NCBI GenBank assembly: GCA_964057225.1 | Contig: OZ059900.1 | Span: 10,106,001-10,170,000, forward strand | Origin: Auanema rhodensis | Lineage: Eukaryota; Animalia; Nematoda | Length of the DNA stretch: 64,000 nt | Direction: 5' to 3' | In this document: piece by piece, positions 23,201 to 64,000 of the stretch | How the letters are laid out: each line of letters opens with the position of its first letter | Numbering within the stretch: the first letter of the stretch is position 1 | Translations under genes and position numbers: made by a program | The notes under the pieces: generated by a model | Told to the model about the DNA's origin: nothing | Database searches by the model: none | What the model saw: the letters and a program-made list of their open reading frames with translations, nothing else

Positions 23201-26200
23201 ACTCCTCATCAAGTTCAATGAGAAAGGTGACTATACACACATGAGAGATTGGAAAAAGAAACGAGGCACAAGGATACATACATAGTAGTGAAGAGATGCT
23301 GATAGCAGCAATGACAAGGCATAAGACAAGATGGAACCTTGTCAGTCAGTCATACAAGGCGTGATGTAACCAACGTCAAGTTGTCACTAGCCAATCAACT
23401 AGACCGCTATGCGCCAAGGTTAACCGCCAGAATATGGTTTTCTGATGATAACAGCCTTTTGTATTTTCAAAAAAATAGACAAAAGTAAAGAGTTCTCGAT
23501 TGATAAAAATGTATTTTAGACATTGCAAAATATTTTACTGTACCTGTATCCTGGCTTCTGGTAAACCAATCTTCTGTGCTAGTCGTTCACGTGCGAATAC
23601 GTCGGGATAATGGGTTCGTTCAAATTCTGTAAATACATGTAATTGTATTTCTTTTACATTATAACATAGTAAATGTGATAATTTGGAGAATAAATAATTA
23701 ATAAATACATGAAACATACCTTTTTCAAGGGCTTCTATCTGTTCTTGGCTAAATGAGGTTCGATTTCGTTGGAGTTTTCGTTTCAATCGCATTCGAGCTG
23801 CTACATCTTCATCAGAATCAGTTGATGGTTTCACATCCTCATCAAGAATAATGCAGGATTGTTCTGTAATAATTAATATACATATATCATACAATTTTAA
23901 AATAAATCATAAAAAAATATATTTTTTGACTTCATTTTGGCTGTTTCAATTAAATTTTTGAAAGAAAAAATAGTACAATTCGTTTAATGAGATAAAACTT
24001 GAAATATTTTATAATATTTTTGGATAAGTTGAAAGAATTTATTATTATAAGATTATGAAAATATTGTTTGAGAAATATCCTACTTCGTCTGATTGTTGGA
24101 GCTTTAATAGCCAGAGGTTGAGTGGATAGCATTTTAATAAGAATAAGCTAATATATATTTATAAAATACAAATATTTAGATATTTATATTTTAATATATA
24201 AATGTATATGTATATAAATATCTCTAATGAATCTGTGTCAAAGATTATTGCAGATTTGTATCAAACATATACACACGTAATTACACGTCAAAGTATCAAA
24301 TAATGATTAATTCTAGTAAAATTGAATAATAAAAGTACAAAGATATACTAGCGATACTATGTATATATCTGTAAGCTGTGTGCCGTATCCTGCGATATGG
24401 AATAAACAGAAGTAGCAGTAGGATGATGCCTAGTACAGACTATCAATCAAAAGTAATAAAATACTTCGAATCGCTTCTTGTGTAGGCAAGAAACAACGAC
24501 ACGGAATACAAGAGGTGGTGTGTGAGAGAGAGAAAGAGAAAGAGAGAGAGAGGGTGGGCAAAGGACTGGTAGCAGTGATGGCGGTGGTTGTGTCTTGGAG
24601 TCTCTCTTTCTGTCTCTCGTTCGTTTGTTCTCCTTTTTCTGGTTGTAAGTCTATCGTTTTTTGTGTCTTCTATGGCTGTTTGACTGTCGAGGCAGAAAAC
24701 AGAAAACGATTTGTAGGAGGGAATACGATGGACTGTTCAAACTGACGAGAACGATAAGAGGCAGTAGTAGCTAGGATGAAACAGTTGTCGACCTTTTTCT
24801 CGTTGTTGCTGAAGTTGTGGGCCGAGATTGCAATGATGTACGTCAAATACAGTCGACCAGTGTGAATGTTGCGAGAGGGAGCACGCAATGCCAAGCAAGA
24901 TAGAGGCCGAACTCTCTTTCTCTCTATATTTCTCAATGCGAGACGAGAAAATCAGCGAAAGATGAAGAGTGAGAGGAAAGATTGTTGGCGTTGATTATTA
25001 AATATTGTACGCAAACGAGATACGCTAACTCAGTCACGTAGATAATGCGTGAATATGATGTATAGATAGACAGAGTGATCTTGGAACGGAAGGAAGTAGG
25101 TAATTAGCCGGTTTTCACCTCCGTAAGCTTGATGAGCAACGACAGCAGATAAGCTAAGCGTGCGACAGCTAGCAGTAATCAACGTAATATAATTAACGTG
25201 TAAATTATAATATTATCGCGTTAATTTCGTTATTGTTGTTAATATTTCGGGAAAATAAGCAGACACAATTACTGCTGTAATGAAAGGCGAATAGATAGAG
25301 CTGAGTTGAGAAGTTCAGCCAGTTACTGTGGATCTGAATGGTCACTAGCAAACTGCTGACGATGGGCCGTTCGTCAAGAATCTGGGGCGGGACATATATG
25401 CGTATGTAGTGAAGGTGGTCTTCCTAGAGGAGATAGCTATAACATAGTATAGAAAAATTGGAGAACGCTGAGAAAAATAGAATAGAGTGGAAGAGGAGTG
25501 AGAGAGAAGAAAGAGAAAAAGAACTAAGATATAGTCAGCCAGTATGAGAGTAAAAAAATTCGTTTTGAATACTATTTCTTGTCGTATGCGCTTATTTCTA
25601 TCAACTGTTTAGAGAATTATTTTGCTTTTTTTTGTCGATTTAATCAACAAACCGTCATTTACAACTGTATACTGATATCAGTAAAAACCGACAAAAAAAC
25701 GACTACAACGTGAAAGGTTGCTTGACGGAAAAGAGACAGGGTACATGACAATCTTGCAGTCCATTCAACAAGCAATGCTGCAACGGGTGGGGACTGACTT
25801 TCGAACTCATCATTGGCGTAGACAAGCGTGAATAGTTTTTTATTCATGTCAAGCATCATCAGCTCTTAATTCAATTTCATACAATGTGACAGGCCTCTCG
25901 CTTTCCTGCGATTAGAGTACCATTAACGAACATATCATCATAATGAAAATAAACTTAATGTCCGCAAATTAGATAGATCAACATGAGCGTAAACCCGAGA
26001 AAAAGAAACAATTAGCCTAATGTATGATAGATATATGACACATTTGTGCTGGCAAATTGCATTAAATCATTAATGTTCAGCATTATACAACTATTTGTTG
26101 CCTCTGCTTGGGCTGTATAGATTTTTTTGGTTAGTTTCATTGATTGTTCAAACAGTCTATTCCCTTTGCCCACACTTTGTTATTTTGCCTCCTTTTTCGA

Positions 26201-49099: not shown

Positions 49100-51066
49100 T
49101 TATATTAATTCATCAGATTCAACCAGAGTGTCCTCATCCTGATAGATGACATCGTCATCAGCAACTTTTAAAGAATGAGCAACATTGTATTCATCATCAT
49201 TGAATAAGCCTTGTTCCTAAAAATAAGAATAATCAAATGATTCAGCTCATTTTTATCGTTTTACCCGTAATTTTTCAATTTTCTTGGCGCTTATATTTGG
49301 TGTTTTAACATCGAAAACGTTGTGAAATTTACCAAAATCAATATTATATTGTCCTCGATCTTTTTTATATTGTACCAACTTTTCAAATCTGTTAATTATA
49401 TATAAATATAACTTATATTCATGTTTATAGATATGTGATACCGTTTACCCCAAAGAATTTCACGAGGAAGAAAACTGGTACGTGCCTGTGTTGTTGATCC
49501 TACGCTTTCAACAACACCCTCCAATATAGCTAGAAGATAAAGAGTTATTTATATTATATTAATTATTATTATAATTATAATTATTATTATTATTATTATT
49601 GATTTTAATATTTTAATTGTTGTACCTATAATCTCGAATGATTCAGTTACGAGATCATCTCTGCCAATGCTATACAGAGGACTATCCTCATCAATAACGT
49701 GACAAATGGTTATAGGCCAAATAACGAAAATTCTATCTAATCCCTGATCATATCTGAAACTTTTTATTTCATTATATATTATATTTTTAATTATATCATA
49801 TAGTATAAATATATTTGCTTTCTTTCAACTTACCCAACATTCATATCAAGTTGATGATATGGAATTAGTTCGCCTTCAGTTGTTAATGTTCGTTTAATCA
49901 TCTATAATAATAAAAGCATTTGTCTTATACTAATTATGATAATCTTTAATTTATTATGATTTATTTATATTTTTCCATTATATTTTAATTCGATTATTTA
50001 GTGAAAAAGTAGAAACGTACTTGTAGGCGTACATGAGCTTCTGCTAAACTGCTCTTTCGCATATCACCGACACGAAATAATAAACATAATTTTCCATTTC
50101 TCATACAAATAACCTGATAATAAATTGGTTTTTAATATCCATTATAAAGTTTCGATAATTACGGCATTTTTACTAAAAATTAATGTGGCTGCTCTCTTAA
50201 TTGGCCGGGCTAACTTGGCAAATATAATACCAGCCATTAATGTCTGAATAATCATAAAATAAGTTGGAAGCAACAATTACTTTTTGACTTTACTTGAGTC
50301 ATAAGACCTATCATAAACTGCACACACATTGTTACAACGACGATCAAGCACTGTTCTGTTGGATATCTTCAAGTTAATAGGTATTTCATACTCATTTTTT
50401 TGCTTTTTATAAGCTGATTATTGTGATTTAACATTGTGACTAACCGATGGCCATAGCCAATTGTTGTTTGAGTTGTCAGAGAAAACAGGAAGCTGTTAAG
50501 AAAGCCTTGGCCATTGACAATACATGGATCCCAGGATGTATTATTCCTTGGATCCATATCACCATGCAATCTGATGCAATGTAAATATTGAAAGTGAAAA
50601 CGATTGTTTCATTCTTACTTCCCTATCTGAAAATAGCAGCAAGCAAAGAATGTCCATGAAGCAAAGAAGGAAAGAGCAAAAATAGTAAAACACCATCTCC
50701 ATTGCATTTCAATAACAGTTGTGAAAATGTCACTGAAATAAGTAATTGAAAGGGAGAAATATAGAACAGATGACATATGATAATTCAATAAAAAGTAAAT
50801 TATATAAACGAATTTTATGTGAAAGTACCTGCAGTACATTCGTCGCTGTTTCGGCACATTCTTTAAGCTGATATTACATATTCCCTGAAAGTATAATAGT
50901 CAACAAAATATTTAATTGATGTTTTCCCATACAAATAAACAAAATAAAATTAAAAATTCTATTAAATAAAAATCAATACTTGTTTTTGAATTAATCTATT
51001 TTTGGCGGGTCGTGTAGTACTTGTTGAGAATTGACGCTGCTTTGCTGTTGCAATACATTGATCCAT
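49100..51066 (-). CDS. Inward-rectifier potassium channel (Kir, nematode irk family), 12 exons
   Basis: Spliced translation gives [24 protein letters not shown], pore [80 protein letters not shown] and [30 protein letters not shown]. Stop at 49100-49102. Confidence 0.96.
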
Positions 51067-57321: not shown

Positions 57322-59362
57322 ATGAACCGTAGATTTTCAACAGAGGTAATAATTTTTTTATCTTTTTCACGTACTAATACTAGCATCATTTGATTTTTTT
57401 TCGTTTATACCTTTTTTCAAATAAAACTGATCAATCTCACATCCAGTATATGCTGCTAGATACAAAGCCTTTCATATTCTATTTTCAAAATGAATTACAT
57501 TTTACACCACAGCAATTAATCTTAAATCGTTTCAGGACTTTCTAAGTTTCATTGAAGATCCCGATTCGCAGGAAATGTAAGATAAATTCAAATTTTAATA
57601 ATAATCACTTATGAAACCAATTGTTATTTCAATTTAAAATAATATTTTCGTCATAAATACTTAAGTAATAATAAGCATTTTGTATAAATTATAGATTTGA
57701 AGAACTTTTTCCAACCACATCGCAGTATGAATACAATTTTCGTATCATATCATCATTGCTATATGCTTCACTTGCTGTTATGGGGTAATTGACTTTGAAT
57801 TTTTCAGTTAAAATCTTAGTTTGCAACAAATAATTTAGCTTAATCATTAGGAGTTTAATTATATATTGCATACTATAACGAAATAGATTTTTTTTTGCAG
57901 TTTCGTCATTAATTGTTTTTTCTGTTGGATAATATGGAAGGCAACTGGCTTGCATCGCGTCAGCCATATGCTAATGGCAAATATGGCTGTTAGCAATTTG
58001 CTATTTTTAACATTTTTTTCACCCTATTTTCTATCCACGTTTATATTAGAAGCCAATTGGATTCTAGGTATTAATTTTCTCTCCTTTTTTAATTGATTTC
58101 ATCATTTCAAAGTGTTTTCTTAAGTGTTACATGACGAATTTTCTTATTATTTCCTTATTTTAGGACGAACAATATGCAAAATATCCTTCTCTATTCCATA
58201 TGTCACGGTTACAGGTACGCTAGGATGTTAGTGCAATGTATGCATCATGCCATTCTTAGGTTCATTCTACTTTATGGCCCTTGTGGCGCTTGACCGATGG
58301 CTGGCTATCTTTCATAGAAAACGACGACTTAACTTCTCAATCTCCATCGCACTAACTATAGCCACATGGACATTAGCTATATGTGTGGCTAGTCCATATA
58401 TTTATCAAAGTGATGTAAGATGATTGCCTAAAAATCACTAAACAAACATTTTTCTATTTTAATCTGATTATAGGTTGTTATAGCGGGTGTCTCGTCAAAG
58501 CCAGCATTAGCACTAACGCGATGTGGCAGAATGCCAACAGAGTATGATGATCATCTGAATATGGTGGGCTTGAATTACTAGATGCTCTCAAAACATTTCA
58601 TAATTTATAATTTCAGATTATTTTGTTTTTTCAATATGGTATACCCTTAGCCATTATGGTGCCAGCATATTCACATTTGGCTTACTTCTTGTATAAGAAG
58701 CAACCGATTGGAAAGCAGACACAGAATAGCAGAAGTCGTTATTACAAGCGAAAGCAGCGACTTGTTGGTACACTCATTGGTATTTTAATTGTTCAGGTAT
58801 GTGACACGGAAGTAAAAATAAAAGAGAAAATAGTCAGTTTATCAGTATTTATCATTTTATATTTGTTTAGTTACTCGGCTGGTTGCCCTTATTTTCTGTG
58901 CCATTAATCAATAAGATACTGGGAAAATGGCATTATGCCCCTTCAATTGTTTGCTCTATGATTGCTTTGATTGGAGTAACTGTAAGATTTGCTCAGTATT
59001 TCAACGCATCCACGCTTAAACATTATATTTCCAGCTGACTCCAATATGTTATCTATGCAACGATGGCTTGAATACTCAAGCAAGAGATACATTACGCTTT
59101 ATAAAAGGTCAAATCTTCCGCTGTTCAGGTCAGCGTGGTATAATTTGAAATATTTCATAACATTACTTATATTTTCTATTTATAACAGATTTATCAGCAT
59201 ACAATGGCGAATCAGCTCCATTACAAAATTCCACAACGACCGCGCCCAATAACGGTCAATATACATCAAATGTTATTGAAACTTCAGTTGAGGTATACAC
59301 AACTATTTCATAATATTGCCATTTCTTCAATGTTTCAGTTTCAAATTGTTTCAAATTTATAA
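57322..59362 (+). CDS. Class A (rhodopsin-like) GPCR, probably neuropeptide-receptor-like, multi-exon
   Basis: Spliced translation: MNRRFSTE-DFLSFIEDPDSQEI-FEELF...LAVMGFVIN (TM1), LMANMAVSNLL (TM2), W.LG..ICK, VALDRWLAI (TM3), TW...VASP (TM4), QYGIPLAIM..AY (TM5), GWLP (TM6), LTPICY (TM7). Terminal exons are less certain. Confidence 0.9.
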
Positions 59363-60595
59363 TGCTTTCAACACACACATCACATAGGAATTACTATACA
59401 ACATTGCAATCAAATACAGTTATCTCTAGGCATCTGTTTCATTTGTTTTTCAAGATCTTCACGAATACGGCAAACACAATATTACTGGAAGAAAATTATA
59501 CACATCTCTATTGTTATTAAGAAGAATTATGTGATATTTATTTAACTACATGCATAAATATTAAAATTGAGTATTATTTATAGATAATGCACTGCTGTTG
59601 TTGTTAAGCTAATTATACAGCAACTGAATATAAAAAGCATTGACCTAATTTTAAACTATCATAACCATAACTAAACAGTTATTCAGTTTTTTTCTATATT
59701 TAATAGTAACGTACATTAGATATTATATGAAATATCTGTTTATGTTTTTATTGATTTTTTATACAAAATTAAGAGAAAAAAAAGTTCTTTTTCAATTTTA
59801 TAATTAGCTCTTTTTATTGTTCGCGAACTTTATTTGTTTTAATATTTTTGATTTTAAAAAATAATAACGAATTTCAACTTTTAGTGTTCTTTTGAATATT
59901 TATTAAAAAAATAGCTATATTCATCTAATATTCGAACAAACTACTAGTTAACCCACGCATGTATATGCAAGACAAAACAAGCAAATGAACATCAAAACTC
60001 AAACATTAATTATGAATTGTAGAGAAAAAATAAATATTAAACGTTATGTAGCTTATTTTTCGAAATTTAGTGATATTTTTAAAATAATTTATAACTTTTA
60101 ATAATGGGTATTCAACATTTTAATGTACTATCCATATACACTATAACCCCCCCCCCCGCAATAGTCTTACTACACTGTTGTTTTGAAAACAACCTTTTTT
60201 GTGGCATTTGAATCTAGAAGTCAAAAAAATGTACGACGTATTATATTGGAATTATGCTTGAGATACCGCCAAAAGGACAGAAAAGTCTTCATTTTTGTTT
60301 TCATATAAGCACTTGAAAATGAACTATTAGGAATGAAATTGTGACGTTAGTTCTCGTTAATGTTTTGAAGAATTTCAATTTTGTTTCCTTTTTCTCAAAG
60401 AAATAATAATAATTTCTCATCAATAAATTTGAATCCATTTTTTACCGCATAAATGTATTATACTTCCCTTTCCAGCTTTTGAAGGGACTTATAGATGTCT
60501 AGTAGTCATCCAACCAACTAAATTTTAACTAAAAAGAGTGGATCAAAGATGAATCACGTGGACAGCCGGATGACATGTATGGATTTGTACTTGAT

Positions 60596-61090
60596 AGTAG
60601 TATAGGAACGAGGGATTATAATACCATTTTCGACATTTTGCTCTGTAGAACGTTTTTTCTTTCTCCGATGACAGATTTACAACACTTTTTTCAAAAAAAT
60701 GTGAAATGAGTAAATTTTAAGAGGACTAAAAAGTGCTTATTTTCAATAATTTTTATACATTTTCAACCATTTTTTTGTTGAGATGTCGATTTCATTTTTT
60801 ATTTTCTATTTTCATGCTTAAATACTCAAAAATGTGTCATTTTTACACTTTTTAGAAAATCAGTGGATGTCGAAGGATGTCGATTTCTTTTAAAAAGTGG
60901 TATTATAAAATTTATACTTTTTAAATGACGAATCTAAGATTCGATAAAGATCTAAAGCCATTAACAAACTTTGATCTTCTAGAATTAGTAGACTTATTAA
61001 AGATCAAGAATTTCCGTGGCATCTTTATGAGAGATACTTTGCCTACTAAAATTTTGAAAGAAGAAACTGGTATTATAAATTTAGATTCTT
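60596..61090 (+). repeat. Left terminal inverted repeat
   Basis: Reverse complement of 62597-63102 apart from an 11-bp indel and a nearby substitution, as far as I could see by eye. Confidence 0.93.
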
Positions 61091-61344
61091 CAGAAGGTAA
61101 AGGAACTCATTGGGTTTGTTATTCCAAGGACGCTAAGAATAAAAAGATTTATTATTTTGATTCCTTTGGATTGGATCCTCCATTAGAACTTCAAGAATAT
61201 TTGAAAAATGGGAAAGATAAAATACTTTTATCAACATTTCAAATTCAAGAATTTAATACACACCATTGTGGTTATTACTGTTTACTTCTTTTAAAGTTAT
61301 TAGAATCTTATGATTATCGAAAGTCAGTAATTGGTCTGATGTGA
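60925..61344 (+). CDS. Adenain-like (clan CE) cysteine protease, Maverick PRO; intronless, 139 aa
   Basis: Motifs FRGIFMRD, IINLDS...GTHW (His), YYFDSFG (Asp) and Q.....CGYYC (Gln oxyanion and Cys) are all intact. TATTATAAAA at 60901. Confidence 0.93.
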   Translation: MTNLRFDKDLKPLTNFDLLELVDLLKIKNFRGIFMRDTLPTKILKEETGIINLDSSEGKGTHWVCYSKDAKNKKIYYFDSFGLDPPLELQEYLKNGKDKILLSTFQIQEFNTHHCGYYCLLLLKLLESYDYRKSVIGLM

Positions 61345-61583
61345 ATACCATCATCCATTACAACACCTTTTGGATACACCGGAGATAAGCCAGCAAACGC
61401 GTTTGGCTAGAGTGGAAGGCAGAGACGCGTCTGTGAGCAGAGACGCAGAGGAAACTGCCAAATCGCATTCTTCCATTAACTTTCATGTTTATTATTATTT
61501 TCTCTTTTATTTTGTGTTGCCATTAACTTTTCCCACTTTTTTCTCAAACTGATCGGTTTTTATAGGGCGTTTCGAGTTCAAAC

Positions 61584-62446
61584 ATGCCCCGGCACTTCAT
61601 CTCAGTAAGTTAAACTTTAATTTTAGAATTCTTGTATGTTTAGTTTATATTAATTTAATATTTCATTTTAGCCGCAATCTCGCTCGCTATTCGCTACGTT
61701 TCTTGATGTCTGCACCAGACTGAAAGAAAAGTGAGTATATGACTTATATTATTTTTATAATTAATTTTTAAATTTTCGCTTTTTATTTTTTTTTGTTCTA
61801 GAATCATCAACAACGATAACGAAACGCGTGTAGTTTTGGACGCAGCTGTGTTCAAGTATATCGTGGACCTCGATCTTCTTCTTCAGAATCCATCAGGTAT
61901 ACGAAACCTCTAATATTTTCGGTTTCTCATATAAATTTTTAAAAAATATTCTTATTTGATAAATTTGAAACTTTTCCTGTAGTTTATAAAAATATTTTGT
62001 TTTAGTGCGTGGAAACCTTGATCCGACCATGCGCACCCCTATGGTTAACATGGTATGTTTCTTTTTTCTAATTCTTCCGTCAACAATAAATTATAATATT
62101 AGACTAATCTATGTAAAAGTATTTATATAATCATTTAATTACTGAATATTGTATTTAGCAATCGTCAACAGGAGTCCTTCTGAAACGAATGAAACGACAA
62201 ATTAAGGCAATTTGTACTCTCGCCGACGTTGTTTATATTGGTACGTTTCAATACTTTTAAAAATATATTTTTAGAATCTTTCTATATTTAACATTTGAGT
62301 TAATGATATTGCTTTTAGGCCCACCAGCTAATACGAATGAGGCTGAAGTCCTATCGAAGGCCCAGCTGGTGCTGAATCTCTTGTACGACACGATCACACC
62401 ACCGTCTTCTTCTTCTAGTGCAGATGCACAAACTGACTCCGACTAA
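61584..62446 (+). CDS. Six-exon cargo gene inside the mini-Maverick, 143 aa, unknown family
   Basis: Exons 61584-61604, 61672-61730, 61802-61896, 62006-62052, 62159-62240 and 62319-62446. All five introns are GT-AG and the frame is uninterrupted: MPRHFISPQSRSLFATFLDVCTRLKEKIINNDNETRVVLDAAVFKYIVDLDLLLQNPSVRGNLDPTMRTPMVNMQSSTGVLLKRMKRQIKAICTLADVVYIGPPANTNEAEVLSKAQLVLNLLYDTITPPSSSSSADAQTDSD. AATAAA at 62535. Confidence 0.85.
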
Positions 62447-62594
62447 GGAGTCATGGTCCTTATTTTTTCAAACGTTTGTATTTCTTCTTTCATATTTTGT
62501 CACTTCCTCTTTCACTCGTTTGTGCTTTTTTCTGAATAAAGATGTAAAGAAGGGAATCTTGAAAGCTCTACTGCTCCTCTTTTATCTTTCCCAT

Positions 62595-62762
62595 TTAAGA
62601 ATCTAAATTTATAATACCAGTTTCTTCTTTCAAAATTTTAGTAGGCAAAGTATCTCTCATAAAGATGCCACGGAAATTCTTGATCTTTAATAAGTCTACT
62701 AATTCTAGAAGATCAAAGTTTGTTAATGGCTTTAGATCTTTATCGAATCTTAGATTCGTCAT
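62595..62762 (-). pseudogene. Truncated second copy of the protease N-terminus inside the right TIR
   Basis: MTNLRFDKD...GIINLDS then TAA, stopping before the catalytic His. Followed by a 17-nt piece matching 61206-61222. Confidence 0.85.
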
Positions 62763-63102
62763 TTAAAAAGTATAAATTTTATAATACCACTTTTTAAAAG
62801 AAATCGACATCCTTCGACATCCACTGATTTTCTAAAAAGTGTAAAAATGACACATTTTTGAGTATTTAAGCATGAAAATAGAAAATAAAAAATGAAATCG
62901 ACATCTCAACAAAAAAATGGTTGAAAATGTATAAAAATTATTGAAAATAAGCACTTTTTAGTCCTCTTAAAATTTACTCATTTCACATTTTTTTGAAAAA
63001 AGTGTTGTAAATAAGGTGATTATCTGTCATCGGTGAAAGAAAAAACGTTCTACAGAGCAAAATGTCGAAAATGGTATTATAATCCCTCGTTCCTATACTA
63101 CT
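62597..63102 (-). repeat. Right terminal inverted repeat
   Basis: Reverse complement of 60596-61090. Confidence 0.93.
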
Positions 63103-64000
63103 CTTGATAAAGCCAAAATGTTTAGTGAAGCGAAAAGATTGATGTATCGCGTATCCCATAACTAGCAATTCAATATAATATATTCTTATACATGTAAAAC
63201 TACTTTCTTTGGTGAATCAAACTCAATTCTTAAATTTATTCAAGATTTTTCAAGCAGAAAAATGCAAAAAGCAAGTGACAAAGGGAGAGAACTACAGTTT
63301 ATTATAATGGGTACATCAGCTCTATCATTGTTAAACTCATTTTCAGCCCAAAAATAAACTTCTAAAGAAAAAAAATTATAAATTATAAAATATCCATTAG
63401 AACTTGATGAGCACTTTCTATAATTTTAGAAAAAAAAACTGATAGAAACATAAAAAAAGGTTTAATGAAGATGTGCTCCAAATATAAATTTTTTTATATT
63501 TTTTCGAGAGACATTCCCAGTTTTATCGGTTTTTCTTAATTTTCTATTTTTTTTGAACAAGTAATTTATAATTTGATGATATTCTAACAAAGAAATTATG
63601 CTCAATCTTAAAAATTTCATTTTTTTTTAATCTTTTTCATTTTTTTTGTAAGTATCCGCATAGAAAATGTTGATTCAGCATCTGATGATAGCTTATAATG
63701 TCAAGAGAATAACCGAACGTCTCTTCTGCCCATATCAAGATAGATATATCGTTGTTGTCTTTTTGTTTCTGTTGTTGTCTGATCTTTCTTTGTTTATTAT
63801 GTGTCAAAAATATTTGAATGACAATCGAGGATGTCATTCAATGCTTGCCGTGAAATCAAACATCAGCTCTTTCATTTTTCTTTTTCTGATAAATAGCATA
63901 GGTTTCTGGCTTGTGTTTCTTTTGACACGGAAAATGCTATCAAGATTTGCAATATTTATTTATTTGTTGTATAAATTACACAGAGATATGATGAATGATA

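Follow-up and report, generated by a model that had tools for sequence, protein, structure and literature searches.

Inverted repeats and target-site duplication of a short element

We analysed a 64-kb stretch of DNA from the nematode Auanema rhodensis (contig OZ059900.1, positions 10,106,001 to 10,170,000; this whole stretch is referred to as the window), in which an element of 2.5 kb was found with long terminal inverted repeats (TIRs) enclosing two genes on the same strand, an intronless gene for an adenain-type protease and a six-exon passenger (cargo) gene. The coordinates of these features are given in Table 1. As set out below, the element is probably a very young, non-autonomous derivative of a Maverick/Polinton from which the middle has been deleted.

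Table 1. Positions of the element, its components and the neighbouring host genes in the window (position 1 is the first nucleotide of the window)
Feature	Position	Strand	Description
Maverick-derived element	60596-63102		2,507 bp; flanked by direct 6-bp CTTGAT
Target-site duplication, left copy	60590-60595	.	CTTGAT; perfect match to right copy
Target-site duplication, right copy	63103-63108	.	CTTGAT; perfect match to left copy
Left TIR	60596-61090	+	495 nt; contains protease upstream region and first 55 protease codons
Right TIR	62597-63102	-	506 nt; last letters ACTACT
Adenain-type protease (Peptidase C5, clan CE), predicted	60925-61344	+	139 aa, intronless, GC 0.29
Truncated protease duplicate	62595-62762	-	first 55 codons only, within right TIR; from tblastn and open reading frames
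Inter-gene spacer	61345-61583	.	GC-rich block at 61345-61480, then T-rich stretch to cargo ATG
Cargo gene, predicted	61584-62446	+	six exons, 143 aa; no detectable relatives in exon-wise searches
Cargo exons	61584-61604, 61672-61730, 61802-61896, 62006-62052, 62159-62240, 62319-62446	+	
Cargo 3′ untranslated stretch	62447-62596	+	AATAAA at 62535, 89 nt beyond stop; runs into right TIR
TGGTATTATAA sites	60616-60626, 60898-60908, 61068-61078		mirrors at 62609-62619, 62779-62789, 63072-63082
ATGTCGA sites	60630, 60783, 60867, 60877		mirrors in 62804-63062
Homeodomain open frame	23538-23906	-	Pfam E=3e-11; apparently split by in-frame intron
Inward-rectifier potassium channel exons	~49200-50900, e.g. 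50372-50608	-	Pfam IRK and IRK_C, E down to 7e-14; pore signature
Rhodopsin-family receptor	57887-58904	+	three ORFs matching consecutive parts of the profile; nearest upstream host gene

The element is flanked by a perfect target-site duplication (TSD), for which a chance match of 6 bp between two given positions has a probability of approximately 5e-4 with the base composition of the window. Its termini read AGTAGT at the start (60596) and ACTACT at the end (63102). The two TIR arms are reverse complements of each other, with the inner 416 nt being 100% complementary, and all differences between them are located in the outer ~80 nt, where one substitution and one 11-nt insertion/deletion (indel) were found. 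The left arm reaches as far as 61090 and thereby covers 166 nt of the protease coding region, and the corresponding truncated copy of the protease in the right arm points inwards, antisense to the cargo gene.

The arms also contain repeated short motifs. Each arm has three copies of the 11-mer TGGTATTATAA, the outermost of which is inverted, and the 11-mer is absent from the rest of the 64-kb window. The middle one precedes the protease ATG by 27 nt and has a TATA-like look, and the innermost one is separated by 12 nt from the inner end of the TIR. These copies may serve as binding sites or as parts of a promoter, and a template switch may once have taken place at the inner copy. Four copies of the 7-mer ATGTCGA are present in each arm, with 8 of the 10 occurrences in the window being inside the two arms.

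The element encodes a predicted adenain-like cysteine protease

The protease open reading frame (ORF) has no stops or frameshifts, and is the second-longest ORF of the window, which has a GC content of 31%. The encoded protein scored 28.9 bits against the Pfam Peptidase_C5 family (adenovirus endoprotease; cut-off 21.3), and a search of a set of 5.8 billion proteins identified 301 homologues, the closest of which was 80% identical. Since these relatives are mostly 130–150 aa in length, the protease represents a full-length member of the family. Among the 301, the sole relative with an informative name was from the nematode Auanema sp. JU1783. The catalytic order of His, Asp, Gln (oxyanion hole) and Cys matches that of the adenain residues (H62, D79, Q108 and C115 in the protein described here), and in an alignment of 89 relatives the columns of Asp79 and Cys115 were invariant, while those of His62 and Gln108 were at least 90% conserved. 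A family-profile search matched adenain (1avp, E=9e-7) and the African swine fever virus (ASFV) protein pS273R (E=7e-6), with alignments spanning the catalytic motifs.

The predicted structure led to the same group of enzymes. The AlphaFold model had a mean predicted local distance difference test score (pLDDT) of 90.8, and its best match to a solved structure using Foldseek was the adenovirus 2 proteinase (E=2e-8, TM 0.68), with ASFV pS273R and Ulp1 also being top matches. The closest predicted viral fold by TM-score was an adintovirus adenain (TM 0.81, root-mean-square deviation 1.9 Å), and the protease of the Sputnik virophage was also among the predicted-fold matches. The product of 60925–61344 is, on the basis of its profile matches and model, predicted to be an adenain-like cysteine protease.

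Among the protease relatives (P0014, P0033, P0076, P0101, P0106 and P0109 were noted in this respect), several are located on contigs of 15–24 kb, the size of complete Maverick-type elements, and others on scaffolds between 94 kb and 2.8 Mb in size, showing that the protease family occurs as element-sized contigs and also within large eukaryotic scaffolds. The relative P0075 (56% identical) is filed at NCBI under a metagenome-assembled genome of a Balneolales bacterium, and probably represents a eukaryotic or viral contig wrongly binned with this bacterium.

A six-exon cargo gene and its upstream spacer

The predicted cargo gene contains five introns of 67–109 nt, all of which start with GT and end with AG, and its exons add up to 432 nt with no in-frame stops. 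The GC content is 0.47 in the exons versus 0.15–0.19 in the introns, and the GC content at third codon positions is 0.49, versus 0.22 in the protease and 0.20–0.35 in host ORFs nearby. At 19 nt upstream of the cargo ATG there is an in-frame stop, whose position is also that of a candidate acceptor AG. Based on these features, the six-exon gene is taken as real. The introns are GC-poorer than the average of the window (0.31), and the exons are GC-richer than the neighbouring host frames, a mixture that is not obviously in line with recent acquisition from a GC-rich genome, nor with a gene native to this region.

Homology searches with the cargo gene were performed exon by exon. As single-exon queries, exons 5 and 6 had no matches in Pfam or the PDB, and exon 3, itself a short-exon query, had 0 matches among 1.84 billion representatives. 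Exon 6 had no match in the 5.8-billion set, in which the candidates were only proteins of 23–72 aa, and no inhibitor, toxin or antidote family was matched in the exon-wise searches. Because the exons are only 15–41 aa long, these results are a weak negative. The only Pfam match obtained with the exons was below threshold, and the candidate assignment based on it, of exon 3 (61803–61895) to Pfam MOZART2 (PF12926, gamma-tubulin ring complex partner) was rejected, as the score of 12.1 bits (E=0.17) was below the cut-off of 23.3, and there was no PDB match at E up to 10.

The spacer between the two genes opens directly after the protease stop with a GC-rich block of 136 nt (GC 0.485), in which the motif CAGAGACGC is present twice in direct and once in inverted orientation. 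The predicted RNA fold of this block was only slightly better than that of shuffled sequences (z = -2.1), the open frame in the spacer had no Pfam match, and no Rfam families were detected in the 64-kb window. The spacer is likely to consist of the upstream region of the cargo gene together with the junction left by the loss of other Maverick genes, and the GC-rich block may function as control region for the cargo gene.

Assignment to the Mavericks and absence of other core genes

Mavericks are defined by a 6-bp TSD, termini of 5′-(AGT)2//(ACT)2-3′ or (AG)3//(CT)3, and TIRs of 46–1,447 bp (PMC8097293), and the 6-bp TSD is also part of the definition of Mavericks/Polintons in PMC3014272. The doubled end motif has been tied to the jumping-back initiation step of protein-primed replication (PMC8097293), and the TIR of the C. 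elegans Maverick is 744 bp in length. The element has a 6-bp TSD, long TIRs with the doubled AGT motif and an intronless gene for an adenovirus-like cysteine protease, and its derivation from a Maverick/Polinton (adintovirus-like) element is well supported, with the TSD, end motif, TIR length, adenain-like protease profile and predicted fold all in agreement.

A Pfam scan of the 163 ORFs of at least 62 aa did not detect the Maverick polymerase, integrase, packaging ATPase or the major and minor capsid proteins in either the element or the window, as apart from the protease of the element only homeodomain, IRK channel and rhodopsin-type receptor domains were found. The 1.5 kb between the arms is occupied by the protease and the cargo gene, and has no room for other core genes. 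It is thus well supported that the element is non-autonomous and unable to move by itself, since the genes for replication, integration and particle building are absent. Within the 64-kb window there were no further copies, as blastn with the element only returned the element itself and its own arms, and tblastn did not detect paralogues of the cargo exons or the protease. We found no published miniature Maverick bounded by TIRs and a TSD and containing two intact genes; the literature shows fragmented and degraded Mavericks.

An original prediction, made from the letters of the window and its open reading frames, had proposed a perfect CTTGAT TSD, AGTAGT termini, near-identical TIRs of about 500 bp, an intact His-Asp-Cys protease and a frame-intact six-exon gene, and each of these was recovered here with the properties described above. 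The same prediction had inferred descent from a Maverick/Polinton and a lack of autonomy, with which our analysis agrees, and had considered the second gene to be cargo, in keeping with its GC-rich exons, its introns and its location adjoining a TIR, as is seen for the cargo of nematode Mavericks. The extension of the TIR into the protease gene was not part of that prediction.

Age of the insertion and meaning of the intact reading frames

The single substitution in 495 aligned TIR positions corresponds to approximately 0.1% change per arm. The expected number of substitutions since the arms were identical is 0.42 for the protease and 0.44 for the cargo coding sequence, with a 95% upper bound of ~2.4, and by this estimate the element is very young. 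As only ~0.4 substitutions are expected per ORF, the intact ORFs are uninformative on selection, and both genes are most likely intact because the insertion is very recent, rather than because they form a special two-gene system. The element illustrates clearly that intactness of the ORFs in an insertion of such youth should not be taken as evidence of function.

Possible origins of the element

The TSD and termini show that the element entered the chromosome by a 6-bp-staggered, integrase-type reaction as is typical of Mavericks, and both complete termini are kept. The integrase-mediated insertion that the original prediction had read from the TSD thus stands, but the TSD does not imply that the miniature form was the inserted unit, because insertion of a full-length element followed by loss in place would look identical. 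Only the end-proximal genes are left, with the protease, whose promoter region and start belong to the TIR, on the left side and the cargo gene adjoining the right TIR, and since both genes are end-proximal, their survival can be explained without invoking function. The two genes would therefore survive by location and not as a working pair. All of the missing Maverick genes would once have been located in a single gap, between 61344 and ~61350, and the middle may have been lost before insertion, from a defective genome that was integrated using the enzyme of a helper, or afterwards in place; we consider these about equally likely.

Two routes to the present anatomy can be envisaged, with about even probability. 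The TIR of the parent may already have been ~500 nt in length and have covered the start of a terminal protease gene, in which case one internal deletion would suffice. Alternatively, the parental TIR may have been shorter, and a one-ended fragment, while replicating in linear form, may have regained the missing end by using its left end as template, which would have lengthened the TIR into the protease gene and would mean that the deletion predates the insertion. The latter route would be favoured if the published gene orders hold in this lineage, because the protease is internal in these. If the element is transcribed, double-stranded or antisense RNA would be expected from the ~500-nt inverted repeats and from the promoter copy of the right arm that faces inwards, and because of such RNA the element is more likely to be silenced than active.

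Taken together, the element is probably best explained as a Maverick/Polinton derivative that arose by deletion, is non-autonomous and very young, with its genes kept by their position and the youth of the insertion, in an AT-rich animal genome. It also has the signature of the nematode cargo slot, with a cargo gene of high GC content containing introns beside a TIR, and a viral gene that is intronless and of low GC content. Several points weigh against this explanation. It is based on a single copy in the 64-kb window, and the terminal protease conflicts with published gene orders, as the protease is internal in vertebrate Mavericks, while the ends of Caenorhabditis Mavericks are occupied by integrase and cargo on one side and polymerase on the other. 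The position of the protease in the element therefore requires either at least two rearrangements or a gene order particular to this lineage. Furthermore, complete genes with their flanks were spared at both breakpoints, for which random deletion gives no guarantee, and the cargo gene could have a selected role.

The TIR extends 166 nt into the protease coding sequence in both arms and is 100% identical over the inner 416 nt, as would be obtained by self-copying of an end, and this anatomy could also be explained by the miniature itself being a propagating non-autonomous element. It would then be a defective replication product that relied on a full-length helper for integration enzymes and serves as a minimal passenger-gene vector, with a one-ended fragment having regained its end by copying the left end and thereby extending the TIR into the protease. 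Such an origin is consistent with the termini, end motif and TSD all being complete, with the presence of protease relatives on 15–24-kb contigs, the size of complete elements, and with the non-terminal position of the protease in the published orders, as a standard element that had simply lost its middle in place would not have this anatomy. However, neither a second copy nor helper genes were detected in the window, and the TIR of the parent may simply have been ~500 nt long and have included the start of the protease, with nothing special being needed, so we regard a propagating miniature as possible but clearly the less probable explanation. The wider scenario of a whole family of miniature Mavericks, with ends regained by copying and integration (perhaps also packaging) by a helper, which would vector a lineage-specific orphan gene while the protease and the promoter copy serve a parasitic lifestyle, appears doubtful.

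The original prediction had further proposed that the two genes form a selected module, consisting of a protease toxin with the cargo gene as antidote or inhibitor, or acting in helper interference. Both genes are intact and on the same strand, the fold matches place the protease in clan CE, which includes deubiquitinases as well as effector enzymes with host proteins as targets, and Maverick cargo has once given rise to a toxin-antidote element. In that system, msft-1/tlpr-1 of C. briggsae, the toxin is an HtrA-like serine protease that was Maverick cargo captured by a Mutator-like element (MULE), with the antidote originating from a MULE-associated gene. The precedent holds to the extent that a Maverick-cargo gene and a protease are involved, but the protease of the element is the Maverick's own cysteine protease rather than a cargo serine protease residing in a MULE, and neither msft-1 nor its partner showed similarity to the genes of the element. 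The intactness of the genes is expected from their age alone, and their end-proximal position explains why both were retained. In addition, the protease is an ordinary member of a family of 300, with the same length and catalytic set and up to 80% identity, and the cargo exons matched no inhibitor, toxin or antidote family. The proposed module is thus unsupported, and we consider it highly unlikely. Less probable still, and close to negligible, is an assembly artefact in the form of a fold-back chimera, or a chance inverted duplication, without any insertion of a mobile element. Perfect long inverted repeats can indeed be artefacts of assembly or library construction and only one copy was seen, but the arms are bounded exactly by a 6-bp duplication with a chance of ~5e-4 and by the published Maverick end motif, they differ by one substitution and one indel, which is not expected of a fold-back, and the protease has 301 natural relatives.

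Comparison with known systems

In nematode Mavericks, the viral genes are intronless and of low GC content, and intron-bearing cargo is located in a GC-rich slot of 2–5 kb beside one TIR, with most copies being incomplete (10.1101/2022.07.12.499685). Like the cargo Mavericks of nematodes described by Widen et al. (10.1101/2022.07.12.499685), the element is bounded by TIRs and combines an intronless viral gene of lower GC content with a GC-rich, intron-bearing gene beside a TIR. It is however only 2.5 kb in length, compared with ~15–20 kb for nematode cargo Mavericks, and is without the integrase, polymerase, ATPase, capsid and fusogen genes. The cargo is located in the interval between TIR and integrase in nematode Mavericks but between TIR and protease in the element, and the start of the protease gene lies inside the TIR, unlike in nematode cargo Mavericks. 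WASP and KRMA are cargo families of nematode Mavericks, and the exon-wise searches with the cargo of the element matched no family. As a further link to the nematode elements, the named protease relative comes from a rhabditid nematode.

The vertebrate Mavericks/adintoviruses described by Barreat and Katzourakis (PMC8097293) share with the element the (AGT)2//(ACT)2 motif and a perfect 6-bp TSD, and the TIR of the element falls within their range of 46–1,447 bp. They contain eight conserved genes, with the protease in an internal position at the inner end of the integrase-capsid module (PMC8097293). In the element, by contrast, the protease is terminal and is the only core gene.

Adenain requires a peptide or DNA cofactor. 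The catalytic order of His, acidic residue, Gln and Cys and the clan CE fold of adenain (PDB 1avp and 1nln) are shared by the protease of the element, which is shorter (139 versus 204 aa) and ~20% identical. Unlike in the setting of adenain, no capsid substrate is encoded in the element.

The anatomy of the element can also be compared with other deleted replicons. Internally deleted non-autonomous DNA transposons keep the cis-acting ends and have lost the machinery, and in defective adenovirus-type genomes, a TIR that has grown over formerly unique sequence is a known result of self-copying end repair in protein-primed linear replicons. The element resembles both in that ends were kept and machinery was lost, but amplification into a family is not in evidence, with one copy in the window.

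Transfer of genes among distantly related nematodes is documented for Mavericks only, and nearly all known copies are large and decayed. The element shows very recent Maverick integration activity in this genome, and it marks the parts that survive beside Maverick termini. Provided that there are more copies, it would represent the first clear case of a non-autonomous Maverick with a passenger gene, and it is a candidate for the first miniature, cargo-bearing member.

Genomic context of the insertion

The window is animal DNA, as judged by the predicted homeodomain, inward-rectifier potassium channel and receptor genes (Table 1), which by themselves do not narrow the host to nematodes. The Auanema relative of the protease, the style of the introns and the published work suggest a nematode host. 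Ten ORFs of the window, one of them the protease, had no entry in a collection of 15 billion proteins. The element is located ~1.7 kb downstream of the last detected exon of the rhodopsin-family receptor, and the insertion is apparently between genes.

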